This document shows, one piece after another, positions 7,873 through 34,511 of a stretch of DNA of 64,000 nt. The notes under the pieces are model-generated. The model saw only the letters and a program-made list of their open reading frames with translations, had not been told where the DNA came from and searched no databases. The first letter of the stretch is position 1. Each line of letters opens with the position of its first letter. The stretch is from IMG/VR virus record IMGVR_UViG_3300034117_001294, positions 164,850 to 228,849 of that record; one strand, given 5' to 3'. Both the position numbers and the translations under genes were made by a program.

Positions 7873-8138
7873 AATACAGTATTTTAGCACTTGTATTTTT
7901 TCTAGCAGCGTGTTCTACTGCGGTACCCGTAAAACAAAAATGGCCCGAGGCACCTAAAGAACTTTTAGACAAGTGCCAGGCTTTGCAAAAAGCAGACCCT
8001 TCAAAGCCTGCTATAACAGATTTGCTAAAAACTGTAGTAGAAAATTACGGACTGTATTATCAATGCAGTTTGAAGGTAGAAGGTTGGAATGAATGGTACA
8101 CTGAGCAAAAACGAATATTTGATAATTCAAATAAATAA
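7869..8138 (+). CDS. putative outer-membrane lipoprotein spanin (Rz1-like)
   Basis: Signal peptide with lipobox LAA-C, Pro-rich segment, two further Cys; overlaps Rz-like gene. Confidence 0.75.
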   Translation: MKYSILALVFFLAACSTAVPVKQKWPEAPKELLDKCQALQKADPSKPAITDLLKTVVENYGLYYQCSLKVEGWNEWYTEQKRIFDNSNK

Positions 8139-8165
8139 TTAACACTACACTTATTAGGAGCGACA

Positions 8166-8702: not shown

Positions 8703-8711
8703 GGGGCGATC

Positions 8712-17600: not shown

Positions 17601-19501
17601 ATGGTTGGTACGGATTTGATGCAGGTTATAGTGGTAACGGTGGAGATGGTGGTAGTGATGGTGGTGAGAGCATGAATCAAGAAAACTTTGCTGATAGTCG
17701 TAATCCACAAGACAACAGCAACAGTAAACGGCAAATGTTAAAAATTGCATCATTAAACAATATTAAAGATGTGAACAAAATTAATGCAGGGCAGATGTTA
17801 AAATTGCCTAACGGCACAACTTATAAAGTAATGCCTGGAGATACCCTGTCTACAATTGCGGCAAGACAAGTGAAAGATCAATCTTCTCCAATGCCCCAAC
17901 CCTCAGTTAAACAAGGTCCAAACTCTAACATAGATCAAACGACAAGAGATAAAGCACAGGCATTTGTTGGTCAACAAAAACCAGAAATGGGTGGTGGCAG
18001 GGGGGTCGTTAATCCAGCAACCGTCCGGCCCGACGAACCAACCCAAACCGGAGTTCGAAGTGGTCCTAACACAAACATAGATCAACCAGCAAGAGATAGG
18101 GCCAAAGCGGCTGTTACTAAAATTTCTAGTGAAGACGATATCATGAATATGGTTAAAGATCATGAAGGTGTAAAAAATAAACCATACCAAGATACAAAAG
18201 GATTATGGACTGTAGGAGTAGGTCACTTAATTGGTGATGGCAAGACTCTCCCTTCAGAGTGGAAAAGAACATTTTCAGACGCAGAAATAATGAATCTGTT
18301 TAAAAAGGATTATCAGCATCATAAACAGGCAGCAGAAAAAATTCCTGGATTTAGTAATTTAAACATGAACGGACAGGCTGCTCTAATTGATCTAACATTT
18401 AACATGGGTCCAAGATGGTGGAAGGCTTGGCCTAATTTTACAAAAGCCATGCAAGCAGGAAACATAGATCAAGCAGCAAATGCATTAAAAAATAGTGCAT
18501 GGTATTCACAAGTTGGTAGAAGAGCACCTAAAATTGTATCTCTTTTACAGAGCGGAGATCGATCTGTAGCAGAAAACTTTGCGGATGGACGTAATCCACA
18601 AGACAAGGGCGACAGTAAACGTCACGGCGTTCCTACAAAATCGTCAGTGAGCAATCTACGTAAAGTAGCTAAACAAGGCGGCCGTAAAGGACAATTAGCA
18701 CATTGGATGGCAAATATGAAAGCAGGTAAAGCAAAAGCTAAGAATGAAGACTTCAACGGCGAATACGACGACGAAGCAGGAATGGCACAGAGTAATCTAC
18801 GCACAATGGCTCGTGCAGTTGATGGTTTATTAAAAACTATTAAGAGCAACGATAACTTGCCAGAATGGGGACAAGAAAAGATTGCCAAAGCAGAAATGAT
18901 GTTGGTCAGTGTCTGGGATTATTTGTTAAGCCAAAAAGAAATGGGCATGGATCCTAAGATCAACGAAAGCAAGGCTGTAGAAAGTTTAAGACAGATTGTC
19001 GCAGAGTTGTCCAATGAAAAATTAGGACAATATAAAAAGGCCGCCGGTGATCAAGCAACTGCCGCAGACAAAGCGGGCGACTATGCTAAGGGTCATAAAC
19101 GTTTCAAAGGAATTGTTAAAGCAACTAACAAGCAGTTTGATAATGATGCTAAAAAGCATAGAGAGCAAGGTATGGCGGAGGCTGGCAGCAATGCTATAGA
19201 TACTGTATCTAAACGCTTAACTGATCCTAAAGATGGAATGACAGCCAAACTTAGAGCAGCTGGTGATAAGAAACGCGATAGTCAGTACATGGGCACACAG
19301 ATTGCTAAGAATGATCGAACCAGTAAAGACGAATGGGGCAACTTAAAAGAAAAGATTAAAGGTGCAGACGGCAAAGCCTGTTGGAAAGGTTATAAGTACG
19401 CAGGTACTAAGAACGGTAAAGACAAGTGTGTGCCAATTGGCGAAGCCTACGAACTTGAAATGACCCTGGCTATTCTAAAGCTGTTTGAAAGTAATAAATG
19501 A
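14693..19501 (+). CDS. 1602-aa multidomain polyprotein: Pol-beta-like nucleotidyltransferase, ligase-like domain, HIGH nucleotidyltransferase, LysM-like, GH24 lysozyme, charged modules
   Basis: SGSS..GDID; KIDG..CEV..EGIVI..IKV; GHKGH..VGED..MSFTKLR; YKVMPGDTLSTIA; HEG..PYQDTKGLWTVGVGH..LIDLTFNMG..SAWYSQVGRRA. Confidence 0.8.
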   Translation: MNLNELFSNKKKVVSEGGNLSLPGGHDAQQIDLKVHNRSYIVPILDTLLININSSFAKKYKKPLWNPQLLQSKQFLSGSSLHFFNTKGITDQQFVEKKPKVGDIDTQVNKENEQELEQWLSASQGKMVGNAKFLGFQRGNEQFSSLWELQDPPIKVQIDLEFVEFDKDEPTPWSKFSHSSSWDDLNAGVKGVFHKFLIQSLASLSRKDFLLRKAVGRGKAKEIQDVPTTDNMVSFAVSSKEGGGLRAKYEPVLDANGQPLISNGMPVMQALPATGYEQDIGKIFGSIFGSRLNPKQAAQLESKYWSFTGLVDAMNTLVTPEEKQSVLSAFIDKIFGKGAQGLYKGDPERDSAEKSAALDLMINKLGVQTPSDLEQMKQQYKASYRVTAESLQEAEVKAQFRKNMPHLRDLKPIDFLDLLDEIHDGNGNFKLQNIPLNVKIDGFGGRFGKDAEGKPFMATSNTPPRYKAGFVQYHQDKGTTDPEILGRAEKFDELFNEMMNAIKLVDSKLGADFLVNKQVTCEVLFLPFAAETSEGKLKFVGIQYDKFPPGVELVLVPFRVVDASSGEDVPDANDVVTSLSKLGGQGSVRFLSNSLVQKDGLDVTEIINPLDNIEELKQIVSDTAGKRDRASLQLRREVEEKLMPVKIALEKAIDADPNIIGKDILGQDYEGIVINSRLGPIKVTSQQQKDIITQKNAAKAAARAEQPRGENKTAVVAIGSFVGHKGHQQLFGLTINKAKEVSGDPYLFMGSAVGADDPIPVADKIKTWKQLYPEYAGNISAVTQEGGSLMQKIKHELINPLPGKPPRYDNVIIMVGEDQAKMPIAQALMKAVNKFPGYEHVKVQLEVTPRGTGMSFTKLRNVLKTGDEQQAFQMWNDAFNGGQDGAKPLPSQWIKHLMDVSKTGMSTPQPKPAVKKPAVLPTPQTVQQPALGEMRLFNALMSPKKIVNEKTIEERKRKKSKGAAWGPGPYGWYGFDAGYSGNGGDGGSDGGESMNQENFADSRNPQDNSNSKRQMLKIASLNNIKDVNKINAGQMLKLPNGTTYKVMPGDTLSTIAARQVKDQSSPMPQPSVKQGPNSNIDQTTRDKAQAFVGQQKPEMGGGRGVVNPATVRPDEPTQTGVRSGPNTNIDQPARDRAKAAVTKISSEDDIMNMVKDHEGVKNKPYQDTKGLWTVGVGHLIGDGKTLPSEWKRTFSDAEIMNLFKKDYQHHKQAAEKIPGFSNLNMNGQAALIDLTFNMGPRWWKAWPNFTKAMQAGNIDQAANALKNSAWYSQVGRRAPKIVSLLQSGDRSVAENFADGRNPQDKGDSKRHGVPTKSSVSNLRKVAKQGGRKGQLAHWMANMKAGKAKAKNEDFNGEYDDEAGMAQSNLRTMARAVDGLLKTIKSNDNLPEWGQEKIAKAEMMLVSVWDYLLSQKEMGMDPKINESKAVESLRQIVAELSNEKLGQYKKAAGDQATAADKAGDYAKGHKRFKGIVKATNKQFDNDAKKHREQGMAEAGSNAIDTVSKRLTDPKDGMTAKLRAAGDKKRDSQYMGTQIAKNDRTSKDEWGNLKEKIKGADGKACWKGYKYAGTKNGKDKCVPIGEAYELEMTLAILKLFESNK
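17681..18621 (+). repeat. about 50-bp imperfect direct repeat (17681-17730, 18572-18621) flanking the LysM-lysozyme module
   Basis: GAAAACTTTGCTGATAGTCGTAATCCACAAGACAACAGCAACAGTAAACG vs GAAAACTTTGCGGATGGACGTAATCCACAAGACAAGGGCGACAGTAAACG. Confidence 0.85.
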
Positions 19502-23064: not shown

Positions 23065-25734
23065 ATGAGCTACGTCGATTCAATGTGGGATCGCGACAAG
23101 GACGTTATTCGCGTCGTTGAGCGTGATCCCAAAAAAGGCAGAATCTTTCAAGATTATCCTGCCAAATATGTATTATACTACCCAGACTCTAAAGGAAAAT
23201 ATCGTTCAATTTACGGTGATCCTCTTAGCAAAGTTTCTGTCAAAAATTACAAAGAGTTCCAAAAAGAAACCCGAATTCATTCAGGAAAGAAACTCTTTGA
23301 AAATGATATTAATCCTGTATTCCGATGCCTAGAAGAAAACTATTTAGGCAAAGATGCTCCTAAGCTCAATGTAGCATTTTGGGACATTGAAGTAGACTTT
23401 GATCCAGAACGTGGTTACAGTACTCCTGAAGATGCGTTCATGCCAATTACTGCGATTTCTGTCCACCTACAATGGTTAGATACATTAGTATGTCTTGCAG
23501 TCCCCCCAAAGACACTGACAATGGAGCAAGCAGTAGAGCAGGTAAAAGACTTTCCTAACACAATGCTGTTTGAAACAGAATACGAAATGTTGGAAACATT
23601 CCTGGGCTTGATTCAAGATGCAGATATTTTAAGCGGATGGAACAGTGAAGGATACGATATGCCTTATACTGTCAACCGCATCATTAAAGTTCTTAGCAAA
23701 GAAGATACCCGTAGGTTATGTCTATGGGACCAGTTCCCCAAGAAACGGGAGTACGAGAAGTATGGAAAAAAGGCTATTACTTATGATCTTGTTGGTCGTG
23801 TTCATTTGGACAGTCTCGAGTTGTACCGCAAGTACACCTATGAAGAGCGACATACATACCGATTGGATGCAATTGGAGAGATGGAGGTAGGTGAAACTAA
23901 GACGCAGTACGAAGGTACCCTAGATCAATTGTACAACAATGACTTCCGCAAGTTTATTGAATACAACAGGCAAGATACTGCATTGCTGAATAAACTAGAT
24001 AATAAATTAAAATTTATTGACCTAGCAAATACACTAGCACATGAATGTACTGTGTTGTTACAGACCACAATGGGTGCTGTGGCTGTAACTGAGCAGGCCA
24101 TTGTAAATGAAGCTCATCATCGAGGACTAATTGTTCCGGGTCGTCCTAAACGTGATGATGATTTAGAAACACAAGCCGCTGGTGCGTATGTTGCATATCC
24201 TAAGAAAGGATTGCATGACTGGATTGGATCAATGGACATTAACTCATTGTATCCGTCAGCTATTCGTGCATTAAACATGGGACCAGAAACTATTGTTGGG
24301 CAGTTACGTCAATCTTATACCAAAGCTGAAATTGAAGGTAAGATAGCAAAGGGTTCTAGCTTTGCAGCCTCTTGGGAAGGCAAGTTCGGCAGTAACGAAT
24401 ACGAACTTGTCATGGCAAAAGATCGTGTAACTGATATCACAGTTGATTGGGAAGATGGCAGAGTTGATGTGCTAAGTGGGGCTCAAATTTATGAACTGAT
24501 TTTTGAAAGTAATCAGCCGTGGGTTATCTCAGCAAACGGTACTATCTTTACCTATGAGAAAGAAGGGATCATTCCTGGATTGTTGAAACGTTGGTATGCC
24601 GAACGTAAAGAAATGCAGGCAAAATTAAAAGAATGTATTGCATCGGGGAATAAAGTTGAAGAAGAATATTGGGATAAAAGACAGCTGGTTAAAAAGATTA
24701 ACCTTAATAGCTTATACGGTGCTATTCTTAACGCTGGTTGTAGGTTCTTTGATAATCGTATTGGGCAATCCACAACTCTTACTGGTAGACGGATCGCCAG
24801 GCATATGGCTTCGAAAGTAAATGAAGTTATTACTGGAGACTATAACTACACCGGCAAGAGTGTGATATACGGTGATACTGACTCTGTATATTTTAGTGCA
24901 TACACTACTTTAAAAAATGATATCAATAAAGGGGTAATTCCCTGGAACAAAGAAGTTGTCGTTCAACTATACGATACTATCTCTGAAGAAGTAAATGGAA
25001 CATTTCCACAATTTATGTTGGACGATTTTCATTGCCCAAAAACTCGAGGAGATGTTATTAAGGCCGGTCGAGAATTTGTTGCTATCAAAGGCATCTTTAT
25101 GACCAAGAAGCGATACGCTATCTTGTACTTTGACAAGGAAGGTAAGAGGCAAGATATAGATGGCAAGCCAGGTAAAATCAAAGCCATGGGCTTAGATTTG
25201 AAACGTAGTGATACTCCTGAATTTATGCAAAACTTTTTAAGCGAGATTTTAACCAAAGTTCTTAACAATGCTCAAGAAGAAGAAATTCTAGAACGTATCG
25301 GTGAGTTCCGAAGTGAATTCAAACAGAGGCCTGGGTGGGAGAAGGGTAGTCCTAAACGTGCAAATAACATTGCAGAGTATCAGGCCAAAGAAGTCAAAGC
25401 GGGTAGAACCAACATGCCCGGACATGTTCGTGCTAGTATTAATTGGAATACTCTTAAACGTATGAACGGTGACAAATACTCGATGGGTATTGTAGACGGC
25501 ATGAAAGTTATTGTGTGCAAGATGAAAGACAATCCATTAGGATACACTTCAATTGCATATCCAGTTGACGAAATGCGTTTACCGAAATGGTTCCAAGAAC
25601 TTCCGTTTGATCATGGGGAGATGGAGGCAACCATTATTAACAATAAGCTAGAAAACCTTATTGGAGTACTAGAGTGGGATTTAGAATCCACTACACAAAA
25701 TAATACATTCGGCAGTTTATTCAGCTTTGAATAA
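23065..25734 (+). CDS. B-family DNA polymerase (T4 gp43-like)
   Basis: ExoI DIE, ExoII GWNSEGYD, ExoIII YNRQD, motif A DINSLYPS, motif B KINLNSLYG, motif C YGDTDS, KKRY. Confidence 0.96.
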   Translation: MSYVDSMWDRDKDVIRVVERDPKKGRIFQDYPAKYVLYYPDSKGKYRSIYGDPLSKVSVKNYKEFQKETRIHSGKKLFENDINPVFRCLEENYLGKDAPKLNVAFWDIEVDFDPERGYSTPEDAFMPITAISVHLQWLDTLVCLAVPPKTLTMEQAVEQVKDFPNTMLFETEYEMLETFLGLIQDADILSGWNSEGYDMPYTVNRIIKVLSKEDTRRLCLWDQFPKKREYEKYGKKAITYDLVGRVHLDSLELYRKYTYEERHTYRLDAIGEMEVGETKTQYEGTLDQLYNNDFRKFIEYNRQDTALLNKLDNKLKFIDLANTLAHECTVLLQTTMGAVAVTEQAIVNEAHHRGLIVPGRPKRDDDLETQAAGAYVAYPKKGLHDWIGSMDINSLYPSAIRALNMGPETIVGQLRQSYTKAEIEGKIAKGSSFAASWEGKFGSNEYELVMAKDRVTDITVDWEDGRVDVLSGAQIYELIFESNQPWVISANGTIFTYEKEGIIPGLLKRWYAERKEMQAKLKECIASGNKVEEEYWDKRQLVKKINLNSLYGAILNAGCRFFDNRIGQSTTLTGRRIARHMASKVNEVITGDYNYTGKSVIYGDTDSVYFSAYTTLKNDINKGVIPWNKEVVVQLYDTISEEVNGTFPQFMLDDFHCPKTRGDVIKAGREFVAIKGIFMTKKRYAILYFDKEGKRQDIDGKPGKIKAMGLDLKRSDTPEFMQNFLSEILTKVLNNAQEEEILERIGEFRSEFKQRPGWEKGSPKRANNIAEYQAKEVKAGRTNMPGHVRASINWNTLKRMNGDKYSMGIVDGMKVIVCKMKDNPLGYTSIAYPVDEMRLPKWFQELPFDHGEMEATIINNKLENLIGVLEWDLESTTQNNTFGSLFSFE

Positions 25735-25787: not shown

Positions 25788-26522
25788 ATGAAAGACATTC
25801 TTCAAGACATCGTAGGTCACACACATAACCTTGGTTTCCTAAACATTGTGAAAATTACTGGAGACGATAAAAAGACCTCCGTTGACAGTATGGCAGATGA
25901 CCGTTCAGTTATCATGTACGCCGAAACTGCTAACCCATATCCAGATATGATTGGCGTATTTGGTATGCCACAAATGAACAAACTCAAGTATTTGCTAGAT
26001 TGCCCTGAGTATAAAGAAGATGCTAAGATTGAAGTTACTACCGCAGACCGTAATGGCGATACTATCCCAACTGGTTTGCACTTTGAAAATAAGACCAAGG
26101 ATTTTAAGAACGATTACCGTTTTATGAACACTGACATCATTAACGAAAAGTTAAAGACTGTTAAGTTTCGCGGAGTTAGATGGGATGTCGAGATCGAGCC
26201 CAGCGTTCAAAGTGTACAACGTTTTCAGTTCCAGGCGGCTGCAAACAACGAGCACACTACATTCCTTGCAAAGACTGATGGTGGTAATTTAAAGTTTACA
26301 TTTGGTGACCAAAGTACACACGGTGGTGAATTTATTTTTGCAACAGGTGTTACTGGTAGCCTAAATAAAGGATGGACATGGCCTGTTCAAAGTGTATTGA
26401 GCATTCTTAAAATTGCCGATGCAAACAATGCCAAAGTTAGTTTTAGCAATGAAGGTGCTATGCAGATTACATTAGATAGCGGTCTAGCTACTTACAAATA
26501 TATTATTCCAGCACAGGCATGA
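25788..26522 (+). CDS. putative DNA sliding clamp (gp45/PCNA-like)
   Basis: 244 aa, directly after polymerase; PCNA-like C-terminus (GAMQITLDSGLATYKYIIPA); clamp loader present in window. Confidence 0.65.
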   Translation: MKDILQDIVGHTHNLGFLNIVKITGDDKKTSVDSMADDRSVIMYAETANPYPDMIGVFGMPQMNKLKYLLDCPEYKEDAKIEVTTADRNGDTIPTGLHFENKTKDFKNDYRFMNTDIINEKLKTVKFRGVRWDVEIEPSVQSVQRFQFQAAANNEHTTFLAKTDGGNLKFTFGDQSTHGGEFIFATGVTGSLNKGWTWPVQSVLSILKIADANNAKVSFSNEGAMQITLDSGLATYKYIIPAQA

Positions 26523-26890
26523 TAAAAGGGTTAACCCACAGTGGACTATACCTCCAGGTAACTGGAGGCAGTCCAATGAATCCTTACATTCCTTCCGGAA
26601 ACCAATCAGCAGGTATGATGAGATATAATACCTCTAATCATAATATAGAAGTGTATGACGGTTCATCGTGGCAAGAGTTAGCCAGCAGCTATGCTAGTGT
26701 ATCAATGACCAGTGAAGCAGTAGCATTGCTTGACTGGGCTCGAAAGAAGCGTGACGAAGAATTGCAACTTGAAGCATTGGCCCGAGAACATCCTGCTATT
26801 AATATTGCCTTGGGCAATTTAAAGAAGGCCAAGATACAATTAGATGCTACAATAATATTAAGTAAAGAACATGACGAAACAACAAGTTAA
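26519..26890 (+). CDS. hypothetical protein
   Basis: GMMRYNTSNHNIEVYDGSSW motif plus helical C-terminus. Confidence 0.75.
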   Translation: MIKGLTHSGLYLQVTGGSPMNPYIPSGNQSAGMMRYNTSNHNIEVYDGSSWQELASSYASVSMTSEAVALLDWARKKRDEELQLEALAREHPAINIALGNLKKAKIQLDATIILSKEHDETTS

Positions 26891-28508
26891 CCTAACACCA
26901 TTACAGAAAGACTATGCTGTCTATTTGCCAGCTATTAGTAGTTTCTATAGTACCTATGTTGCCAAACAACGACTAGAAGAATTCGTGCCTAAAGCTCGAG
27001 TTCCGGCAGGATTTGATCGTGGTATTGAAGGTATGAATTTTTTAAATCCTGAACAAGGATATTTCACATACAAGTACGGTCTATACTCTGCGGGTCACGC
27101 ACAGTTGGACTTGAATAAGAGTATAACGCAGGAGTCAATGATCCAACAACGTGATCGCGGGAATACAATGATTCTGGGAGACTCCGGCGGATACCAAATT
27201 GGTAAGGGCGTTCTAAAGTTTGACTGGTTAGACTTTGAAGGTAAAAGTGCTACTAAGACACGCCAAAGTATTTTAGAATGGCTCGAGCTCACAGCCGACT
27301 GGTCAATGATGTTAGACGTTCCTACATGGGCTTGCGATCACATCCATAGTCCAAAGACAGGCTTAAAAACATTCGATGACTGTTTAGACAAGACTCGCTA
27401 CAACAACGATTACTTCCTAATGAATCGATTAGGCCAAACTAAATGGCTCAATGTTTTACAAGGTTCAGATTGGGACACTGCTGAAAAGTGGTATGCAGGT
27501 GTAAAAGAATTCAGCGATCCTAAAGGTAAGTATGCAGGTCGCGAAGCAGAAGGTTGGGCCTTCGGTGGTGCCAATATGTGCAAGATGGATATTACACTCA
27601 AGCGTCTAATGACCTTGCGTGAAGATGGTTTGCTGAAGGGCAAAAACTGGATCCACTTCTTGGGTACAGCACAACTCGACTGGAGTTGTTACTTAACTTT
27701 GATTCAACGACAAATTAGGAAACATATTAATGAAGAGCTTACCATATCTTTTGACTGTGCCTCACCGTTCATCGCAACAGCACACGGACTTGTCTACACA
27801 AACGCAGTCCACACGCCAAAAAGGTGGAGTGTTATTATGGACAAAGCCCCAGATAACAAAGCACTTTCAGGATCAGATATCCCGTTCCCATTCGAATCGT
27901 CAATCGGTCGCAGACTAACAATGAAGGATATTGCCTACTATGATCTAGGCGAGAGAAAGACTGACGCAGAATTAAATGGTGCTAAGTTTGATCACTTAAA
28001 TCCTGCTCACTATAACACTGTGCCGAGACTTAATAAACTAGGTAAGATTCCAAACAAAACATCGTGGGATAGTTTTGCCTATGCATTGATGATGGGTCAT
28101 AATGTTGAGTGTCATATTGTTGCGGTACAACGTGCTCAACAGTTAATGGATATTGAGATTGCCAAGACTTCCGGCAAGCTACATTGGACACATTGGAAAA
28201 AAGTTAAGGGCTCTGATATGAGCGACGAACACAGTGACTGGGTTCCTAGAAATGTGTTATACTTTAATACCTTTGTAGAGGATCTATTCAATACTAAGGA
28301 TAAAGCAGAAGCATTTGCAATGATCGAACAAGCTATGCCTTTCTTAAAGAGTTTAGAAGGTTCTCGCTTGCAAGGCGGTCCTGCTCAAAACAAGTTTAAC
28401 AACTTATTCGAAATTGAAGAAGTTACTACTTCGTCGGAAGTAGATTTAGAAAATCCAGACGATGACGACCTACGTTCTTTAGAAGAAGGAATTATTAATG
28501 AATCGTGA
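26871..28508 (+). CDS. tRNA-guanine transglycosylase-fold protein, DpdA-like deazaguanine insertion enzyme
   Basis: LGDSGGYQ, MMLDVP, LNVLQG, GWAFGG, IHFLG, SFDCASP, late HN; clustered with folE and queE. Confidence 0.8.
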   Translation: MTKQQVNLTPLQKDYAVYLPAISSFYSTYVAKQRLEEFVPKARVPAGFDRGIEGMNFLNPEQGYFTYKYGLYSAGHAQLDLNKSITQESMIQQRDRGNTMILGDSGGYQIGKGVLKFDWLDFEGKSATKTRQSILEWLELTADWSMMLDVPTWACDHIHSPKTGLKTFDDCLDKTRYNNDYFLMNRLGQTKWLNVLQGSDWDTAEKWYAGVKEFSDPKGKYAGREAEGWAFGGANMCKMDITLKRLMTLREDGLLKGKNWIHFLGTAQLDWSCYLTLIQRQIRKHINEELTISFDCASPFIATAHGLVYTNAVHTPKRWSVIMDKAPDNKALSGSDIPFPFESSIGRRLTMKDIAYYDLGERKTDAELNGAKFDHLNPAHYNTVPRLNKLGKIPNKTSWDSFAYALMMGHNVECHIVAVQRAQQLMDIEIAKTSGKLHWTHWKKVKGSDMSDEHSDWVPRNVLYFNTFVEDLFNTKDKAEAFAMIEQAMPFLKSLEGSRLQGGPAQNKFNNLFEIEEVTTSSEVDLENPDDDDLRSLEEGIINES

Positions 28509-29016
28509 TTATGCAACGGGCACTAGTGATCAGGTAATTTTCTTTACAGGAAAAGAAATTGAACATACTGCGGCATATGGAATGGACACTTTGTTTGTAA
28601 CAGGTGTCCAAAATCCAGCCGAAGTATTACTGCTTGCAAAACAAGAAAAAGTAAAACATGTATACTTTGGAGCAAATCAAAGTTTTAAACCAAGAAGTAC
28701 AGAAGAACTCGAAAATTGGAAACTAATGATTATGGCTCTTTTGAAACAAGATTTTTGGTGTACTCTAGATTTTGATTGCAAATATGCAGAAGATATTTTG
28801 GAAACGGGACTGAATGAGCAAAGAAAATTCATTTCGATGATTTCTGTTAAGCTACCCTACTTGACACAGTTCAATTATAATGCTACAATAAAGCTAGACG
28901 ACAAAGATTTTGAAGCAACTAATGCAGGAGTTTGGACGCATAGGTTGCACGACTTGTTGGATAGTAATAAGTTTACCGATTGGGATCAATATAAAGAGGA
29001 CGAAATAGCAAAATGA
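28498..29016 (+). CDS. conserved hypothetical protein in deazaguanine cluster
   Basis: 172-aa ORF overlapping the TGT-like gene; HVYFGANQSF, IKLDDKDFEATNAGVW. Confidence 0.75.
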   Translation: MNRDYATGTSDQVIFFTGKEIEHTAAYGMDTLFVTGVQNPAEVLLLAKQEKVKHVYFGANQSFKPRSTEELENWKLMIMALLKQDFWCTLDFDCKYAEDILETGLNEQRKFISMISVKLPYLTQFNYNATIKLDDKDFEATNAGVWTHRLHDLLDSNKFTDWDQYKEDEIAK

Positions 29017-29219
29017 AAGAGTTTACAGTTAAAGAAAATAAAGCGTTTAGACTTCGAGTACAAAGTAAAAAATGTCTTACTCCTACAGATTTAAACCATG
29101 TACAGTTTATTCAAGAATGTTTTAACAAAGATGGTGAAGTTGACTTTACTTCAAACTATCAATTTTTCCTAACCGATTCAGAGATTAAATCTCTTGCAAA
29201 GGAATTAGTTAATGACTGA
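29013..29219 (+). CDS. hypothetical protein
   Basis: 68-aa ORF, overlaps neighbours, GAGG RBS. Confidence 0.65.
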   Translation: MKEFTVKENKAFRLRVQSKKCLTPTDLNHVQFIQECFNKDGEVDFTSNYQFFLTDSEIKSLAKELVND

Positions 29220-29595
29220 TCTTAATATGATTTGGGTTACCTTTCGCAAGGAAGGTGTTCATCTGTATCCCGCAGCGGCCACAGATCCTAAACTTAAAAC
29301 AGGCGACATGTATGATGTTAGCTTCCTTGGTACTCCGCACCGTCATATTTTCCATTTTAAAATCTATATTCAAGTATTTCACGATGATCGTGATATTGAG
29401 TTTATTCAGTTTAAGCGTTGGTTAGAGCACTGCTACACAGATGGCACACTCGAACTTAACCATAAATCCTGCGAAATGATAAGCCGTGATCTTCACGGAA
29501 CTATTTCTGCAAGATATCCAGGTCGTGAGATTTGGATTGACGTAAGTGAAGACGGCGAGAATGGCTGCTTCATTAAATTTCCTTCAACCCTTTAA
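29212..29595 (+). CDS. QueD-like T-fold protein with LxxxHRHxF motif (DpdL-like candidate CDG decarboxylase)
   Basis: EGVH, FLGTPHRHIFHF, DIEF, SCE, VSEDGENG; lacks the CxxxHGH motif of canonical QueD. Confidence 0.7.
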   Translation: MTDLNMIWVTFRKEGVHLYPAAATDPKLKTGDMYDVSFLGTPHRHIFHFKIYIQVFHDDRDIEFIQFKRWLEHCYTDGTLELNHKSCEMISRDLHGTISARYPGREIWIDVSEDGENGCFIKFPSTL

Positions 29596-29610
29596 TTAGG
29601 TATTATAAAA

Positions 29611-29865
29611 ATGGCACAGCCAAATTACATTCAAAAAACCCTGTTCATGAAACCCGAAGTTGAAAAGATCTTTGATGATCTCGATAAGTGGCTTGATTAT
29701 TGCCGTTTCAACTTGTTGGATTTTAATCCAGCAGACTTGTATCGCTCTCCAGAATACAAGAATTATCAGCGTTGGAACAGCGGAGGTGAACGTCGGCCTC
29801 GCACTGAATACAAGGGTAAAAACCCTCGTCCACAATACAACAGAAATGACAGTTTTTCTCGTTGA
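29611..29865 (+). CDS. hypothetical protein
   Basis: 84-aa ORF; IFDDLDKWLDYCR..FNPADLY. Confidence 0.7.
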   Translation: MAQPNYIQKTLFMKPEVEKIFDDLDKWLDYCRFNLLDFNPADLYRSPEYKNYQRWNSGGERRPRTEYKGKNPRPQYNRNDSFSR

Positions 29866-30940
29866 TTTAGAATCAGTTGAGACTAGGTACACGGGTCAGT
29901 GGAAGACTCATGTACCTAATCTCTTACGAAAGGCAGGACACAATGTTCAAATTATCTCTGGTCCCGCAGATATTCCTAGTGCTACTACCCCTGGGGCTTT
30001 TCTTAATTTTGGCGGCACAAACATCTACAAAGCTCGGCAGGTTGAGCAGATGGGTCGGCTATTTTGCGACGGAGCCGTTCATGCAGGTGATCATTTTATA
30101 TTTACTGATGCTTGGCACCCTGGTATCATCAATCTCAAGTACATGAGTGAACTGCTGGGTATTCCAGTAACAACACACGGTCTTTGGCATGCTGGCAGTT
30201 ATGATCCACAAGACTTCCTAGGACGTCTTGTTGGCAACAAGCCTTGGGTCAGACACGCTGAAAAAAGTTTCTACCATGCTTTTGATCACAACTACTTTGC
30301 CACAGACTTTCATATTCACATGTTTTACGAAAACTTGATCCAACCAGATCCGGATCGTAAAGCAAGTATGTATAAGACTGTATTTGACGATACGTTATTC
30401 AACAACAAGGTTGTACGCACAGGCTGGCCCATGGAGTATATGGATGATATACTTACCGCATACAAGGGTATGCCAAAGCGTGACTTAATTTTATTTCCGC
30501 ATCGTATTGCACCCGAGAAGCAAGTTGAAATCTTTCGTGACTTAAAAGAACACTTGCCACAATATGAATTTGTAGTGTGTCAGGATCAACAACTGACTAA
30601 AAACGAATATCATAATTTGTTAGGCGAAGCAAAAATAGTGTTCAGTGCTAACTTGCAGGAAACTCTTGGCATTAGCTGTTACGAAGGTGCCTTAGTAGAT
30701 GCCGTTCCAATGGTACCAGATCGTCTTAGCTACTCTGAAATGTATTTCGATACATTTAAGTATCCGGAAATCTGGACTCGTAACTGGGAAAACTATCAAG
30801 GCTATCGACCGCAAATATGTCAAAAGATAATGCAGTACATGGAAAATTATAATAAATTCCTTCCTCAATTAAACAAACAAGCACAGGATCTAACCAGTTT
30901 GTTTTTCAGTGCTAACATTCTTTTAGAGAATATAAAATGA
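29846..30940 (+). CDS. GT-B fold glycosyltransferase (GT4-like)
   Basis: ILFPHRIAPEKQ, ETLGISCYEG, PMVPDRLSYSE; start reassigned to ATG 29846. Confidence 0.8.
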   Translation: MTVFLVDLESVETRYTGQWKTHVPNLLRKAGHNVQIISGPADIPSATTPGAFLNFGGTNIYKARQVEQMGRLFCDGAVHAGDHFIFTDAWHPGIINLKYMSELLGIPVTTHGLWHAGSYDPQDFLGRLVGNKPWVRHAEKSFYHAFDHNYFATDFHIHMFYENLIQPDPDRKASMYKTVFDDTLFNNKVVRTGWPMEYMDDILTAYKGMPKRDLILFPHRIAPEKQVEIFRDLKEHLPQYEFVVCQDQQLTKNEYHNLLGEAKIVFSANLQETLGISCYEGALVDAVPMVPDRLSYSEMYFDTFKYPEIWTRNWENYQGYRPQICQKIMQYMENYNKFLPQLNKQAQDLTSLFFSANILLENIK

Positions 30941-31749
30941 ATGACTCTTTTTATCCCAGAATAGGAATTGTAGGGTTAGGCTTTGTAGGTGAAGCTGTTC
31001 GATCTTCTACCGAGTTTGTACCAGATAATGTTGTATGTGTGGACTCAGATGTACGTAAAGGATACGTTGGAACTTACGCAGAGTTGATGACATGTGAGGG
31101 CATCTTTATATGTGTCCCAAGTCCAATGAATGATGACGGAAGTTGTGATACAAGTATTTTAGAAAGTGTTTTAGAAAAACTAAAAGACTTTCGAGGTGTT
31201 ATTATTTCTAAAGTAACTGCACCGCCAAATGTATATCAACGTCTTAATAAAGTCTATCCTAATCTAGTACACAGTCCAGAATTTTTGACCGCGGCTAATG
31301 CCAGTAGAGATTATGCCAACGCAAAGTGGTGTATTATTGGCGGTGATGTTAGAGCATATCGAAACGAAGCAGAACGCATTATCAAAATGACGCAGCCGAA
31401 TTTAGAATCAGTTAAGTTCTGTAATATTGGAGATGCTGCCTTGGCCAAATATGCTATTAACAACTTTCTTGCTACTAAGGTAGTGTTCATGAATGAACTT
31501 TATCAACTAGCTGAAAAAGCTGGATTAAATTATGACGTGATTGTTAATTTAATTAAACAAGATGTACGTATTGGTGAAAGTCATATGCGTGTTCCGGGTA
31601 TAGATGGTTCTTTAGGATTTGGTGGATACTGCTTTCCAAAAGATACAGAAGCACTAATAAACTATGCCAAAGAACATAATGTTAACCTAAATGTAATTTC
31701 ATCAGCCGTGCAGAAAAATTTGCTACTACGGTTGACTGAACCTAAATAA
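30937..31749 (+). CDS. UDP-glucose/GDP-mannose dehydrogenase family (short form lacking C-terminal domain)
   Basis: GIVGLGFVG, FICVPSP, HSPEFL, KYAINNFLATKV.F.NE, GFGGYCFPKD. Confidence 0.88.
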   Translation: MNDSFYPRIGIVGLGFVGEAVRSSTEFVPDNVVCVDSDVRKGYVGTYAELMTCEGIFICVPSPMNDDGSCDTSILESVLEKLKDFRGVIISKVTAPPNVYQRLNKVYPNLVHSPEFLTAANASRDYANAKWCIIGGDVRAYRNEAERIIKMTQPNLESVKFCNIGDAALAKYAINNFLATKVVFMNELYQLAEKAGLNYDVIVNLIKQDVRIGESHMRVPGIDGSLGFGGYCFPKDTEALINYAKEHNVNLNVISSAVQKNLLLRLTEPK

Positions 31750-31760
31750 TAGTATAGAAT
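31732..31760 (+). promoter_or_regulatory. sigma70 promoter for folE, containing TAAATA
   Basis: TTGACT, 17-nt spacer, TAGAAT; TAAATA at 31743-31748. Confidence 0.6.
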
Positions 31761-31804
31761 ATATACATGGCAATCCACTGCCTCAACATCGGAGAAAAAC
31801 TACA

Positions 31805-32506
31805 ATGACAGATACAAGTAAAAACTTATCGCAAGCCATACGCGATAAAATGAAAGCAAACGGAAAAAGATTCTGGGCTGGTGATAATATTTCAGAATAT
31901 ATCAAACCCATGGATAAAATAGACCTTATCAACGAAGCGACAACCGCATTTGAAAAAGTGCTAGATACATTGCTTATTGATCGCGAAACTGATCCAAATA
32001 GTAAAGGCACAGCACGTCGACTGGCCAAAATGTACTACAACGAAATAATGGCAGGAAGATATGATGATGCACCAGACGCAACAGCGTTTCCAAATGATTC
32101 GGAGGACCGTTACGAAGGTATGTTGGTTGTTCGTAGCGAGCTTCGCAGTATGTGTAGCCATCATCACCAACCCGTTAGTGGCGTTGCTTATATTGGTATT
32201 ATTGCGGCTGAGAAACTCATCGGACTTAGCAAGTATACAAGGATCGCTCAGTGGTGTGCCCGTCGAGGTACTCTCCAGGAGGAACTTGCTAATGACATTG
32301 CTAGGGAAATCCAAAAAGCCACTGACGCCAAAGACGTAGGCGTTTACATTCAAGCAGTGCATGGATGCTGTGAGAATCGAGGTATTATGGCACATAGCTC
32401 ATTGACGCAGACTACTGTGCTTAAAGGTGCGTTTAAAGACGACCAAAGTACAAAGAAAGAATTCTTTGACAACATCAAACTACAGCAAGACTTTGCTCCG
32501 AGGTAA
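31805..32506 (+). CDS. folE: GTP cyclohydrolase I
   Basis: SMCSHHHQP, IGLSKYTRI, LQEEL, HGCCENRG. Confidence 0.95.
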   Translation: MTDTSKNLSQAIRDKMKANGKRFWAGDNISEYIKPMDKIDLINEATTAFEKVLDTLLIDRETDPNSKGTARRLAKMYYNEIMAGRYDDAPDATAFPNDSEDRYEGMLVVRSELRSMCSHHHQPVSGVAYIGIIAAEKLIGLSKYTRIAQWCARRGTLQEELANDIAREIQKATDAKDVGVYIQAVHGCCENRGIMAHSSLTQTTVLKGAFKDDQSTKKEFFDNIKLQQDFAPR

Positions 32507-32508
32507 TT

Positions 32509-32721
32509 ATGGCAACACGTAAAAAGAAAGAAACAACAATAGAGATGCCCGGCACAATCGGCGGTGCTAAGATAGTTTTTGCAGAAACAAAAGTTGTCAA
32601 AGGTAGTCACTTAACTGTTACCACTCATCCGGATGGTAAAACAACACTAGAGTGGGACGATGAAGCATTGTTACGTGATGTACGTGCGGCATTCACTAAA
32701 GGCTCAACACAAGGCGGTTAA
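32509..32721 (+). CDS. hypothetical protein
   Basis: 70-aa ORF, GAGG RBS. Confidence 0.65.
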   Translation: MATRKKKETTIEMPGTIGGAKIVFAETKVVKGSHLTVTTHPDGKTTLEWDDEALLRDVRAAFTKGSTQGG

Positions 32722-32722
32722 T

Positions 32723-32938
32723 ATGAATTCAGTAGATATGGCTAATAACTTAATCTTCAGAGCAAGACATCTGCAAGAATTTATTGTTACTACCGACGTG
32801 CCGGAAGACTTTAGATTTAACGGAGTAATACCGTTTGATATTAATATTGCAGATAATATATTAGAGGCCAAAGTTTACGGCGTTGACTTTGACGAAGCAG
32901 TGAATCGATTAAACGACTGGCTGGAGACATGCAAATGA
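32723..32938 (+). CDS. hypothetical protein
   Basis: ATG 32723 (MNSVDMANNLI...). Confidence 0.65.
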   Translation: MNSVDMANNLIFRARHLQEFIVTTDVPEDFRFNGVIPFDINIADNILEAKVYGVDFDEAVNRLNDWLETCK

Positions 32939-33396
32939 AATGGTTCCTAAACTTTTTAGAGCAAATTGGTCGTAAACGAATTGTAATGGACAGGCAAGAA
33001 AATGAACCGTATCTCGAACGCTACTACTTATTTCTTAAAGATAGAAAGCACTTCCCCTTTAATATCTTTCTTCACAAGTTCCTTAAGTCAGACCCCGATG
33101 ATGTGCATGATCATCCATGGCCTTACGCTACTTTAATCCTTAAAGGTGGTTATTATGAATGGACTCCTAAATTTAATTCACAAGGTGCCAAGATCGGTGA
33201 GACACGGCATTGGCGTGGGCCTGGTCACTTCCGCATTTGCCCTGCTACTAGCTATCACCGTGTTGAGCTTGAAGCAGGAACAGACTGCTGGACAATGTTC
33301 ATGCCTGGACCACAAAGACGTGAATGGGGATTCCTTGTTAATAACAAATGGATCCACAACGACAAATATCTAACTGATAGAGCAAATAATGGATAG
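32929..33396 (+). CDS. cupin-fold protein
   Basis: LHKF..SDPDDVHDHPW...GGYYE...YHRVEL...REWGF. Confidence 0.7.
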   Translation: MQMKWFLNFLEQIGRKRIVMDRQENEPYLERYYLFLKDRKHFPFNIFLHKFLKSDPDDVHDHPWPYATLILKGGYYEWTPKFNSQGAKIGETRHWRGPGHFRICPATSYHRVELEAGTDCWTMFMPGPQRREWGFLVNNKWIHNDKYLTDRANNG

Positions 33397-33667
33397 TAAA
33401 ACAAAAGAAGTAATGGACATTCTACAAGAAGAATGTGCAGAAGTAATTCAAGCGGTGAGCAAGATTAGTCGATTTGGCATTGACAACTTCAAGCCAGGCA
33501 AGCCCAAAACTAATCGAGAACACCTTGAAGAAGAATTGGGCGACATGCTGGCAATGATTGACATCATGCTGGAAAAGAATGTAATATCATTAGAACACTT
33601 AGAAGTTGCAAAAGCTGCTAAGATCGAAAAATTAAAACAATGGTCAAACATATATGAGCAAAATTAA
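33389..33667 (+). CDS. MazG-like nucleotide pyrophosphohydrolase
   Basis: LQEECAEVIQAVSK...LEEELGDML (ExxE...ExxD). Confidence 0.8.
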   Translation: MDSKTKEVMDILQEECAEVIQAVSKISRFGIDNFKPGKPKTNREHLEEELGDMLAMIDIMLEKNVISLEHLEVAKAAKIEKLKQWSNIYEQN

Positions 33668-34511
33668 AATAAGCGAATTATTCTATTCGATTCAAGGAGA
33701 AGGACGCTACATGGGCGTGCCTTCTGTATTTCTACGTACATACGGATGTAACTTTACCTGTCAAGGATTTGGCATGCCCCGAGGCGAGGTAAGTCACGAA
33801 GCAACAGACATTGCGGCACAGCATACAATGATAACTCCATTTACAGAGTACAAGTCTTTGCCTCTTGTTAGTACAGGTTGTGACAGTTATGCAAGTTGGC
33901 ATCCTGCATTTAAAGATCTAAGTCCAATGATTGAGGCTGACGGAATTGTAGAACGCATTATAGAAATGCTTCCTAACAACGAATGGGGGGATGCTCATCT
34001 TGTTATTACGGGTGGTGAGCCGTTGTTGGGTTGGCAGAAGGCTTACCCAGACTTACTGGATCATCCCAAGATGGTAGGGTTAAAAGAAATCACATTTGAA
34101 ACAAATGGTACAATGCGACTGACTAGTGCATTTAAAAATTATCTACGTATTTGGACTACAGAGAATCTAGAACGAGAAATTACTTTCTCAGTCAGTGCAA
34201 AACTACCTTGTAGTGGAGAACCGTGGGATGATGCTATCAAGCCAGAAGTTGTTTGCGATTACGAAAATTACGGCACAGCATATTTGAAGTTTGTTATAGC
34301 TACAGAGCAAGACTTTGCAGATGCAATGAAGGCAACTAAAGAATTCCGTGATGCAGGATTTAAAGGACACGTTTATCTAATGCCAGTGGGTGGTGTAGAA
34401 AGTGTCTATGCACTAAACAACAAGGCAGTGGCCATTATGGCAATGAACGCAGGCTTACGTTATAGCGACCGTTTACAAGTGCCGTTATTTAAAAATGAGT
34501 GGGGAACTTAA
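33654..34511 (+). CDS. queE: 7-carboxy-7-deazaguanine synthase (radical SAM)
   Basis: ISELFYSIQGEG..G.PSVFLR..GCNFTC...CDS, VITGGEP, FETNGT, SVSAKL, YLMP, RLQV. Confidence 0.9.
   Translation: MSKIKISELFYSIQGEGRYMGVPSVFLRTYGCNFTCQGFGMPRGEVSHEATDIAAQHTMITPFTEYKSLPLVSTGCDSYASWHPAFKDLSPMIEADGIVERIIEMLPNNEWGDAHLVITGGEPLLGWQKAYPDLLDHPKMVGLKEITFETNGTMRLTSAFKNYLRIWTTENLEREITFSVSAKLPCSGEPWDDAIKPEVVCDYENYGTAYLKFVIATEQDFADAMKATKEFRDAGFKGHVYLMPVGGVESVYALNNKAVAIMAMNAGLRYSDRLQVPLFKNEWGT

Follow-up and report, generated by a model that had tools for sequence, protein, structure and literature searches.

Several bacteriophages replace guanine in their DNA by a 7-deazaguanine. FolE, QueD and QueE make 7-carboxy-7-deazaguanine (CDG), and phage DpdA homologues of TGT put deazaguanines into DNA as an anti-restriction measure. 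In Cellulophaga phage phiST, which encodes DpdA3, DpdL, FolE, QueD, QueE and a MazG-like protein but no QueC, the DNA contains dDG, and the QueD paralogue DpdL, with its LxxxHRHxF signature, has been proposed to be the CDG decarboxylase (Cui et al., 2023; PMC10516641). In the same study, dpdL and dpdA of Acidovorax phage ACP17, expressed without the glycosyltransferase, gave no dDG in E. coli (PMC10516641). Sugars are found on pyrimidines in phage DNA, such as glucosyl-5hmC in T4 and arabinosyl-5hoC in RB69 and DLP3 (PMC13326640), but are not known for any purine in DNA. In animal tRNA, galactosyl- and mannosyl-queuosine carry a sugar on a 7-deazaguanine derivative that was put into the nucleic acid by a TGT enzyme.

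We examined a stretch of 64,000 nucleotides (the window; positions 164,850 to 228,849 of IMG/VR record IMGVR_UViG_3300034117_001294) from a lake-water jumbo phage. From the sequence alone, it had been predicted to encode, directly after DNA polymerase and clamp, a 7-deazaguanine DNA-modification cluster with an embedded glycosyltransferase and NDP-sugar dehydrogenase.

Results

The genes of the cluster

The observation underlying the original prediction was confirmed, as all of the listed open reading frames are present on the + strand at the stated coordinates (Table 1). The arrangement is not due to chance, since it is syntenic in 80 IMG/VR loci.

Table 1. Features of the cluster and its replication-gene context, in window coordinates.
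Position	Strand	Assignment	Sequence matches and occurrence
23065-25734	+	Family B DNA polymerase (context)	PF00136, 133 bits; PF03104, 64.5 bits; 51% identical to PolB of PA5oct and Phosso
25788-26522	+	Sliding-clamp-like protein (context)	phrog_12062, E 3.5e-38; 33% identical to the Phosso gene annotated as sliding clamp
26871-28508	+	TGT-fold, DpdA-like guanine transglycosylase candidate, 545 aa	No Pfam TGT or DpdA hit
28498-29016	+	o172, conserved acidic protein of unknown function	No family or PDB match; 67 of 81 loci
29013-29219	+	Small ORF, 68 aa, function unknown, variable	No family match; 36 of 81 loci
29212-29595	+	DpdL, QueD paralogue, proposed CDG decarboxylase	phrog_17812
29846-30940	+	GT-B/GT4-like glycosyltransferase, 364 aa	32 of 55 relatives hit PF00534
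30937-31749	+	Two-domain UDP-glucose-dehydrogenase-like oxidoreductase (accessory)	PF03721 and PF00984 only; 34 of 81 loci
31805-32506	+	FolE, GTP cyclohydrolase I	PF01227, 139.6 bits; phrog_2197
32929-33396	+	Cupin ("cysteine dioxygenase" PHROG)	phrog_4786, E 1.7e-40
33389-33667	+	MazG-like NTP pyrophosphohydrolase (accessory)	PF03819, 29.3 bits; phrog_4856; 24 of 81 loci
33654-34511	+	QueE-like radical SAM enzyme (CDG synthase)	phrog_2076, E 7.7e-49; best NCBIfam hits all QueE models, below their cut-offs

Three assignments required correction. The T-fold gene had been called QueD-like, but its LGTPHRHIF sequence matches the DpdL signature, and the protein is 55.6% identical to ACP17 DpdL and 31% identical to phiST gp040. 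The real QueD is encoded about 23 kb upstream of the window (G000:C1:141498-141911, in coordinates of the record) and is of the same CxxxHGY type as in phiST and ACP17. With respect to QueC, searches confirmed that neither QueC nor QueF lies in the window, but two weak QueC-family matches were found elsewhere in the genome. Both are short PP-loop ORFs with no added amidotransferase domain, and this is the extent of the evidence regarding Gat-QueC, which had also been reported as not recognisable.

The third correction concerns the predicted NDP-sugar dehydrogenase, whose gene overlaps the glycosyltransferase stop codon by 4 nt. GLGFVG and GFGGYCFPKD are present, but the protein scored only 134.8 bits against TIGR03026 (cut-off 189.8) and lacks the C-terminal UDP-binding domain; no PF03720 was detected anywhere in the record. 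It belongs to a broad viral two-domain family of 259-293 aa. The gene is present in only 34 of 80 related loci and absent from all cultured phages that carry both the glycosyltransferase and DpdL. The cupin is conserved in this clade but is not specific to deazaguanine systems, as its family is found in more than 100 unrelated phages, with homologues in 107 phage records, mostly mycobacteriophages, and no hit was obtained in the cluster loci of the cultured glycosyltransferase- and DpdL-containing phages.

Predicted structures of the TGT-like protein and the glycosyltransferase

Because Pfam TGT and DpdA models did not recognise the 545-aa protein, its assignment rests initially on fold. The model (pLDDT 81) consists of a TIM-barrel core of about 400 aa and an acidic helical tail. 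The fold matches TGT with Z 18.8; TGT chains scored Z 16-19, compared to 11.8 or less for other TIM barrels. The motifs GDSGGYQ (D104) and SFDCASP (D295) are invariant in 34 clade sequences, and D104, S105, G106, G107, Q109 and D295 remained invariant in an alignment that adds PA5oct and two distant contigs. Profile-profile comparison (hhalign) with the DpdA-type proteins of ACP17, X1 and BCSR5 gave a probability of 96.4% (E 1e-9), and the protein is 42.7% identical to PA5oct EST35_0316.

The glycosyltransferase ORF opens at 29660 with TTG, but the likely start is the ATG at 29846, which gives a protein of the size of its homologues. The protein was modelled confidently as a GT-B/GT4-like fold (pLDDT 94.2, pTM 0.91). 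Its best PDB matches are BshA, MshA, glycogen synthase and BGluT, and its best viral match is the ACP17 protein (TM 0.86/0.91). The predicted donor site is intact, with E272-x7-E280, R220 and K225 conserved, and the N-terminal (acceptor) domain has many invariant aromatic and acidic residues.

Genetic linkage of the glycosyltransferase

We next investigated whether the glycosyltransferase co-occurs with the deazaguanine genes in other phages, a test that had been proposed with the original prediction. In the window's large freshwater clade, the glycosyltransferase is linked to DpdL in 72 of 81 IMG/VR loci, the remainder being truncated. The family also sits beside DpdL, and usually beside a TGT-like gene, in five cultured lineages (PA5oct, ACP17, Phosso, X1/BUDD and BCSR5). 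The gene order is TGT-GT-DpdL in PA5oct, o172-DpdA-GT-DpdL-QueE in ACP17, and GT-TGT-DpdL-QueE in X1. Of six distant metagenomic homologues (31-35% identity), five lie beside DpdL, and the sixth, on a 2.7 kb contig, lies beside o172 instead. The linkage extends across about eleven lineages with shuffled gene order, and the glycosyltransferase travels with the deazaguanine genes in every phage lineage examined that has it. The association ends at the next glycosyltransferase subfamily, for which PhiXhv-12 has GlmS and a BshB-like deacetylase beside the gene instead. The glycosyltransferase stays at 76-85% identity where the TGT-like protein falls to 34%, which indicates strong purifying selection.

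The small protein o172 also travels with the glycosyltransferase. Among cultured phages it occurs only in PA5oct-like phages and ACP17, all of which carry the glycosyltransferase and DpdL. It is directly adjacent to the glycosyltransferase in the locus designated L108 and lies a few genes upstream of it in the locus designated L106.

Discussion

The interpretation offered in the original prediction was partly supported. The reading as a 7-deazaguanine DNA-modification cluster built around a TGT-fold enzyme held, as did the genetic tie of the glycosyltransferase to it, and we found no paper describing a glycosylated deazaguanine in DNA. However, because the T-fold gene is DpdL, the expected base is of the dDG type rather than CDG. 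The suggestion of a uronic-acid-bearing base is weak given the missing UDP-binding domain, the broad family and the patchy distribution of the dehydrogenase.

The explanation we favour, although we consider it about as likely as not, is a DNA guanine-hypermodification module of the DpdA/DpdL type, expressed with the replication genes. In this view, FolE would make dihydroneopterin triphosphate from GTP, the upstream QueD would make 6-carboxy-tetrahydropterin (CPH4), and QueE would contract the ring to CDG. DpdL would then process CDG, possibly by the decarboxylation to 7-deazaguanine proposed for phiST, and the TGT-fold protein would exchange guanine in phage DNA for the deazapurine. We propose that the GT4-like, retaining-type glycosyltransferase, which together with o172 travels with DpdL, transfers a sugar from an NDP-sugar onto the deazapurine, either on the free base before insertion or on the base in DNA, resulting in a sugar-bearing 7-deazaguanine that blocks restriction enzymes. 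The dehydrogenase, MazG and the cupin would be accessory or unrelated. Whereas the gene identities, folds, motifs and conserved linkage come directly from our analysis, every chemical step is inferred, including the acceptor atom, the sugar, and the order of glycosylation and insertion. A glycosylated deazapurine is therefore plausible but chemically unproven, no chemistry being available for any phage of this class. In favour of the proposal, the DNA of PA5oct resists five G-containing restriction enzymes and is hit by a nuclease that senses hypermodified DNA, although its base is unidentified (PMC12191111), and ACP17 dpdL plus dpdA without the glycosyltransferase gave no dDG in E. coli. Several observations argue against the proposal. 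7-Deazaguanine has no hydroxyl, such that O-glycosylation would need an unidentified extra step or an unusual C-, N- or ester linkage. DpdL works without any glycosyltransferase in phiST-like, RHph_I1_18-like and other phages, the TGT-like protein escapes the Pfam models, and the record is only about 65% complete. In addition, the glycosyltransferase family is acidic (median pI 5.7) and its nearest solved structures act on small molecules, and hence it may not touch DNA.

These latter features could instead suggest that the enzyme acts on a small-molecule intermediate, either a pterin or a free deazapurine, with the sugar being a transient carrier or protecting group removed before or at insertion, or ending up in a metabolite that is not in DNA; the DNA would then carry plain dDG or dCDG. 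The closest structures, BshA, MshA and the tetrahydrobiopterin glucosyltransferase 5zer, the invariant residues of the acceptor domain, and the BshA/BshB-like context of the next subfamily are consistent with this possibility. We nevertheless consider it doubtful, since the DNA arabinosyltransferases of DLP3 and RB69 also hit 3mbo and 6kih best (PMC13326640), and the structural neighbours therefore do not discriminate. Furthermore, phiST makes dDG without any glycosyltransferase, so that a sugar carrier is not needed for that chemistry, and PA5oct behaves as a hypermodified phage towards END nucleases.

It is unlikely that the glycosyltransferase belongs to a second, independent modification of 5-hydroxymethyl- or 5-hydroxy-pyrimidines, as in T4 or RB69, that merely shares the replication-module operon, a variant of which (a co-regulated second sugar modification) had also been raised in the original prediction. 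Phage DNA glycosyltransferases known so far do act on hydroxylated pyrimidines (PMC13326640), and PA5oct and Phosso each encode a ThyA-family protein. However, in a search that covered ThyA-type but not TET/5mYOX-type routes, no ThyA-family gene was found in the 229 kb examined, only ThyX, and none was found in the complete genomes of ACP17, X1 and BCSR5. Moreover, the linkage is to DpdL specifically and survives gene-order shuffling. Modification of a protein or host envelope component, with the linkage reflecting only shared timing of expression, appears least likely. GT4-like enzymes are common auxiliary genes of large phages, and the same genome has a separate NDP-sugar cluster with its own glycosyltransferase, but shared timing would not keep one specific glycosyltransferase clade within two genes of DpdL in backgrounds as unrelated as PolB phages, PolA phages and the T4-like ACP17.

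Compared with described systems, the cluster shares with phiST a DpdL with the signature motif, a QueD of the CxxxHGY type, FolE, QueE, a MazG-like gene, a TGT-like gene next to the polymerase, and the absence of a canonical QueC or QueF in the cluster. phiST has neither the glycosyltransferase nor o172 and has a kinase-like ATPase instead, and its 259-aa DpdA3 is only marginally alignable with the 545-aa protein (hhalign probability 22%). In the T4 and RB69/DLP3 systems a GT-B glycosyltransferase is likewise encoded beside nucleotide and replication genes, and the DLP3 and RB69 arabinosyltransferases have the same PDB neighbours (3mbo, 6kih) as the glycosyltransferase of the window, but those systems need a ThyA-family hydroxylase or hydroxymethylase, a dCTPase and a dNMP kinase, whereas here the partner genes make a deazapurine. 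In galactosyl- and mannosyl-queuosine, which occur in RNA and not DNA, the sugar goes on the cyclopentenediol hydroxyl of queuosine, which the present pathway cannot make (no QueC, QueF, QueA or QueG), and the glycosyltransferases are unrelated. UDP-glucose:tetrahydrobiopterin glucosyltransferase (BGluT, PDB 5zer/9v0w) has a GT4-like fold and acts on a FolE/PTPS-derived bicyclic heterocycle (Foldseek E 5e-7, TM 0.56), but it is only 11% identical, is not the best structural match, and its pathway lacks QueE and TGT. The uncharacterised clusters of Acidovorax phage ACP17, Pseudomonas jumbo phage PA5oct (Wroclawvirus), Sinorhizobium phage Phosso, Xanthomonas phages X1/BUDD and Burkholderia phage BCSR5 have the same glycosyltransferase family (23-49% identity), mostly annotated as hypothetical in these records and not discussed in the papers that we could search. 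In these clusters it lies beside DpdL and a DSGG-motif TGT-like gene, with QueE and FolE, and o172 is present in ACP17 and PA5oct. Their gene order differs from that of the window, none has the two-domain dehydrogenase or the cupin in the locus, and o172 in PA5oct and the TGT-like gene in Phosso sit elsewhere.

Genomic setting and gene content of the cluster

The window covers bases 164850-228849 of a 228,849-bp IMG/VR virus record that CheckV rates about 65% complete, and the same sequence occurs in more than 20 lake-water metagenomes. The available assembled contigs of lake-water metagenomes and three metatranscriptomes show its presence and some RNA-library fragments over the glycosyltransferase, FolE and MazG, but carry nothing about base modification. 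The + strand of the first 40 kb is a replication module with a clamp loader, a Lon-like protease, PolB, a clamp, a flap endonuclease and an HNH endonuclease, and also contains a 1602-aa protein with an internal lysozyme/endolysin-like domain (phrog_7, phrog_2083). The - strand beyond 41 kb encodes tail fibres, next to which a single 4164-aa ORF runs to the end of the window. PolB is about 51% identical to those of Pseudomonas jumbo phage PA5oct and the 469-kb Sinorhizobium phage Phosso.

The gene cluster named in the original prediction holds up, since every listed ORF is present and co-directional, mostly with overlapping stop and start codons. FolE (139.6 bits), MazG (29.3 bits) and the N-terminal and central domains of UDP-glucose dehydrogenase were recognized by sequence. 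The QueE-like radical SAM protein matches phrog_2076 ('QueE-like', E 7.7e-49) over residues 2-284; its five best NCBIfam hits are all QueE models, but at 42-52 bits against cut-offs of 200-300, and PF04055 scores 27.6 against 29.5. The TGT-like protein, the glycosyltransferase, the T-fold protein and o172, a conserved 172-aa ORF, have no Pfam or NCBIfam match. Family and PDB searches at the sequence level gave nothing for the TGT-like protein, the glycosyltransferase, o172 and the small ORFs, and the ESM atlas gave no lead for o172. We therefore tested these proteins in other ways. Scans for promoters and terminators, Rfam families and tRNAs added nothing. The only sizeable intergenic gap in the cluster, 250 nt between DpdL and the ATG of the glycosyltransferase, where the mechanically called ORF opens at a TTG, has no Rfam match and no convincing promoter or terminator.

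Positions of features in the window, the virus record (G000:C1) and related loci
Feature	Sequence	Position	Strand
1602-aa protein with lysozyme/endolysin-like domain	window	14693-19501	+
Gap between DpdL and the glycosyltransferase ATG	window	29596-29845	
Likely start (ATG) of the glycosyltransferase	window	29846	
Segment with divergent counterpart in IMG/VR relatives L041 and L043	window	29846-32506	
4164-aa ORF	window	51407-63901	-
QueD (PTPS/QueD)	G000:C1	141498-141911	
Separate NDP-sugar cluster (L104), outside the window	G000:C1	79089-85470	-
Further SDR	G000:C1	about 133 kb	
PP-loop ORF with QueC-like C-terminus	G000:C1 (L003)	~100.6 kb (L003 1474-2094)	-
PP-loop ORF with QueC-like C-terminus	G000:C1 (L004)	~4 kb (L004 1498-2088)	-
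Phosphoribosyltransferase (PF00156) variant	distant contig L096	2537-3007	
Second PF00534 glycosyltransferase variant	distant contig L106	6289-7350	
PolA fused to uracil-DNA glycosylase	distant contig L107	5382-7958	
ORFs between FolE and the glycosyltransferase	Xanthomonas phage X1 (L089)	7332-8944	
ORFs upstream of the glycosyltransferase	Burkholderia phage BCSR5 (L090)	7137-8975	
Homologue of the window-type TGT-like protein	MG592671.1 (Vibrio phage 2.275.O)	330294-331808	

The T-fold protein is DpdL rather than QueD

The T-fold gene had been read as QueD-like, but its product contains LGTPHRHIF. DpdL has been defined as a QueD paralogue in which CxxxHGH has become LxxxHRHxF; it is found in phages that have DpdA, FolE, QueD and QueE but no QueC, and is proposed to be the 7-carboxy-7-deazaguanine (CDG) decarboxylase that yields 2'-deoxy-7-deazaguanine (dDG), which was measured in phiST DNA (Cui et al. 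2023, PMC10516641). The window protein is 55.6% identical to DpdL of Acidovorax phage ACP17 and 31% identical to phiST gp040, and it aligns in register with the motif, which is the same in both. A true PTPS/QueD (52 bits) lies about 23 kb upstream of the window and shares the unusual HCxxxHGY motif of the phiST and ACP17 QueDs. FolE, the QueE-like gene and the TGT-like gene are in the cluster.

No QueF was found in the record. Two PP-loop ATPase ORFs of roughly 200 aa, with an SGGxDS motif and a QueC-like C-terminal cysteine cluster, pass the Pfam QueC cut-off, but only through their C-terminal 60 residues, which make up the zinc region. They lie 64 kb and 160 kb from the window, and one is next to a dual-specificity phosphatase-like ORF. 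Because none of five cultured phages with the glycosyltransferase and DpdL has a QueC over the cut-off, we do not count these ORFs as part of the module, although they are not excluded as the missing QueC.

The 545-aa protein has a predicted TGT fold

A structural model built on 34 relatives (pLDDT 81) matches tRNA-guanine transglycosylases with Z 16-19 over about 300 residues. In VIA-align comparisons the score was Z 18.8 for Z. mobilis TGT with 308 residues aligned, 18.7 for archaeosine TGT and 17.6 for human QTRT1, whereas the best unrelated TIM barrel scored 11.8; the Foldseek E value was 1.3e-7. GDSGGYQIGKG and SFDCASP are invariant across the clade of 34 sequences, and D104 of the former motif and D295 of the latter remain invariant when PA5oct and two distant contigs are added. 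They align with VDSGGLQ and ISYDS of the ACP17-type proteins, and we infer that they are equivalent to Asp102 and Asp280 of Z. mobilis TGT.

The curated models PF01702 (TGT) and PF23859 (DpdA) did not recognize the protein, its 34 relatives or the six-frame translation of the genome, and no PDB sequence hit was obtained. Single-sequence hhalign runs against the phiST, ACP17 and X1 proteins were too weak to be informative, with phiST gp042 (CGPG_00065), the 259-aa DpdA3, reaching a probability of only 22%. A profile-profile comparison was needed: a profile of the window type, including PA5oct and two distant contigs, aligned with a profile of the ACP17, X1 and BCSR5 proteins at 96.4% probability (E 1e-9) over the DSGG, HxLG and (F/Y)D(C/S) motifs. 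The latter proteins are those that sit in the dpdA position, and that of X1 is annotated as queuine tRNA-ribosyltransferase. We therefore call the 545-aa protein a DpdA-like transglycosylase of the ACP17/PA5oct type, a designation that does not imply formal DpdA3 membership. Vibrio phage 2.275.O carries a homologue of the window-type protein (30% identity), but appeared in neither the glycosyltransferase nor the DpdL tblastn lists.

The glycosyltransferase has a predicted GT-B fold and a conserved donor site

The likely ATG start gives a glycosyltransferase of 364 aa, as in its homologues. The model is confident (pLDDT 94.2, pTM 0.91) and is a two-Rossmann GT-B fold closest to GT4-type retaining enzymes, namely BshA (3mbo; Foldseek E 3e-10, TM 0.63-0.67), MshA, glycogen synthase, sucrose-phosphate synthase and the tetrahydrobiopterin glucosyltransferase. 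In an alignment of 55 diverse relatives, built without rows from annotated GenBank loci, E280 of E272-TLGISCY-E280 is invariant and E272, R220 and K225 are conserved in at least 90%. These residues correspond to the EX7E motif and the Arg/Lys pair of the NDP-sugar site of GT4 enzymes, and the donor site therefore looks intact. The window protein itself has no PF00534 hit, but 32 of the 55 family members hit this model (best E 1.3e-8).

The glycosyltransferase is linked to DpdL across phage lineages

Comparative analysis provided the main result. The glycosyltransferase family is very large, with more than 8000 clusters at 90% identity, and 1115 clusters at 50% identity with E of 1e-3 or better. 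In 80 IMG/VR loci chosen through the glycosyltransferase alone, the neighbours are DpdL (72), o172 (67), FolE (67), QueE (65) and the TGT-like gene (62), the shortfalls being mostly due to contig ends. In two IMG/VR relatives, L041 and L043, the flanking genes are 96-99% identical to the window but the glycosyltransferase is only 79% and FolE 89% identical, such that the glycosyltransferase-FolE segment looks exchanged by recombination between close relatives.

Among 50,697 GenBank phage records, 22 have the glycosyltransferase and 28 have DpdL; seventeen have both, always within a few genes of each other. The order is TGT-like, glycosyltransferase, DpdL in the PA5oct group; o172, DpdA, glycosyltransferase, DpdL, QueE in the T4-like ACP17; and glycosyltransferase, TGT, DpdL, QueE in Xanthomonas phages X1/BUDD. 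Burkholderia phage BCSR5 also has both genes, and in Phosso the order is DpdL, glycosyltransferase, then another gene, then FolE, with the TGT-like gene elsewhere. In X1 a PAPS-reductase-type PP-loop protein and two unknown ORFs (215 aa and 143 aa) lie between FolE and the glycosyltransferase, and BCSR5 has ORFs of similar sizes (215, 235 and 155 aa) just upstream of its glycosyltransferase; these may be further pathway steps in those lineages.

We next sampled six distant family members (31-35% identity) from metagenomes. Five have DpdL adjacent, and the sixth, on a 2.7-kb contig, has o172 adjacent. Two of the six also have a DSGGFQ TGT-like gene nearby, and these contigs have PolA, PolA-UDG or PolB backgrounds. 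Distant contigs also showed variants of the module: a phosphoribosyltransferase between QueD and DpdL (L096), a second, ordinary PF00534 glycosyltransferase immediately upstream of DpdL (L106), and a PolA fused to uracil-DNA glycosylase next to the module (L107). The association stops at the next glycosyltransferase subfamily, as the PhiXhv-12 enzyme (26% identity over 66% of the query) sits with GlmS and a BshB-like deacetylase and no deazaguanine genes. Among cultured phages, o172 is found only in those that also have the glycosyltransferase and DpdL, and it is absent from the DpdL phages phiST, RHph_I1_18 and Ahp1, which lack the glycosyltransferase. Conserved linkage despite rearranged order, across unrelated replication backgrounds, argues for a shared pathway rather than shared timing.

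Accessory genes and other sugar genes

The dehydrogenase retains GLGFVG, the GxGxxG NAD site, and GFGGYCFPKD, the catalytic Cys motif (GGxCxxKD), but it lacks the third, C-terminal UDP-sugar-binding domain of UDP-glucose/GDP-mannose dehydrogenases. Only PF03721 (partial) and PF00984 were found, the protein ends about 10 residues after the central domain, PF03720 is absent from the whole record, and TIGR03026 scores below its cut-off. All relatives are 256-271 aa, and the protein belongs to a widespread viral two-domain family. It is present in only 34 of 81 loci and in none of the loci of cultured phages with the glycosyltransferase and DpdL, and is therefore neither a normal UDP-sugar dehydrogenase nor a core part. 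These data weaken its suggested role as a maker of UDP-glucuronate. MazG is in 24 of 81 loci.

We also considered whether the cupin could be the hydroxylase that creates a sugar acceptor, but rejected it as a core part. Its family occurs in 107 mostly unrelated phage records, it is not in the cluster loci retrieved from ACP17, PA5oct, X1, BCSR5 or Phosso, and it is unrelated to the phiST cupin. A separate NDP-sugar cluster outside the window encodes two SDR dehydratase/epimerases, an FkbM methyltransferase, a split transketolase, a DegT-type aminotransferase and a GT34-like glycosyltransferase, with a further SDR elsewhere in the record. It could supply an unusual sugar donor or serve another target.

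Possible acceptors of the sugar

Known phage DNA glycosyltransferases use 5-hydroxymethyl- or 5-hydroxy-pyrimidines made by ThyA homologues (PMC13326640). No ThyA-family gene (PF00303) was found in the 229-kb record, which is about 65% complete and has only ThyX, and none was found in the complete genomes of ACP17, X1 or BCSR5; within a search that did not extend to TET-like routes, this disfavours a pyrimidine acceptor. A small-molecule acceptor remains a serious possibility, because the glycosyltransferase family is acidic (median pI 5.7), its nearest solved structures act on small molecules, and the acceptor domain is rich in invariant aromatic and acidic residues, which would suit recognition of a guanine-like ring. 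If the enzyme does act on a free base, the sugar could still reach DNA, provided that the enlarged TGT-like enzyme accepts the glycosylated base.

The original prediction of a deazaguanine cluster making a glycosylated, possibly uronic-acid-bearing base is supported only in part. The gene assignments, predicted folds, motifs and conserved linkage come from the analysis itself, whereas insertion of a deazaguanine into DNA, transfer of a sugar, the nature of that sugar and the atom that would receive it are all inferred. We consider it likely that the glycosyltransferase works in the deazapurine pathway, but that virion DNA carries a sugar-bearing deazapurine is at best an even possibility and may well be less. 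In this tentative reading, the window's freshwater clade, PA5oct, ACP17, Phosso, X1 and BCSR5 would replace G by a sugar-bearing 7-deazaguanine made by a dedicated GT4-like enzyme together with DpdL and o172. In some members the two-domain UGDH-like enzyme might oxidize the attached sugar in place, which would explain the loss of its UDP-binding domain, but this suggestion is speculative.

Full-text literature searches found no report of a glycosylated deazaguanine in DNA, but two published observations fit the proposal. DNA of PA5oct, a therapy candidate, resists five G-containing restriction enzymes and is attacked by END nucleases that sense hypermodified DNA, and the authors infer a modified G of unknown identity (PMC12191111). 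In addition, dpdL plus dpdA of ACP17, expressed without the glycosyltransferase, gave no dDG in E. coli (PMC10516641), for which the omission of the glycosyltransferase and o172 offers a concrete reason. Because PA5oct, ACP17, Phosso and X1 are cultured phages that carry the same module, the hypothesis is directly testable. Given the abundance of the glycosyltransferase family in lake metagenomes, whatever it makes would be a common feature of freshwater phage DNA and would matter for sequencing bias, restriction mapping and defence-system specificity.

Comparison with known DNA modification systems

The cluster is a real deazaguanine module of the DpdA/DpdL type, which is already known. Compared with phiST, it shares the DpdL signature and the HCxxxHGY motif of QueD, but its TGT-like protein resembles the shorter phiST DpdA3 only marginally, and it carries a dedicated glycosyltransferase, plus o172, that has not been characterized. 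It differs from the T4/RB69-type glycosylated-pyrimidine systems in that no ThyA-family dCMP/dUMP hydroxymethylase or hydroxylase to supply the acceptor was found in the about 65% complete record or in the ACP17, X1 or BCSR5 genomes. All known sugar modifications of DNA sit on pyrimidines, and a glycosylated deazapurine would be the first glycosylated purine in any DNA, a new class of DNA base and a new substrate class for DNA-modifying glycosyltransferases.
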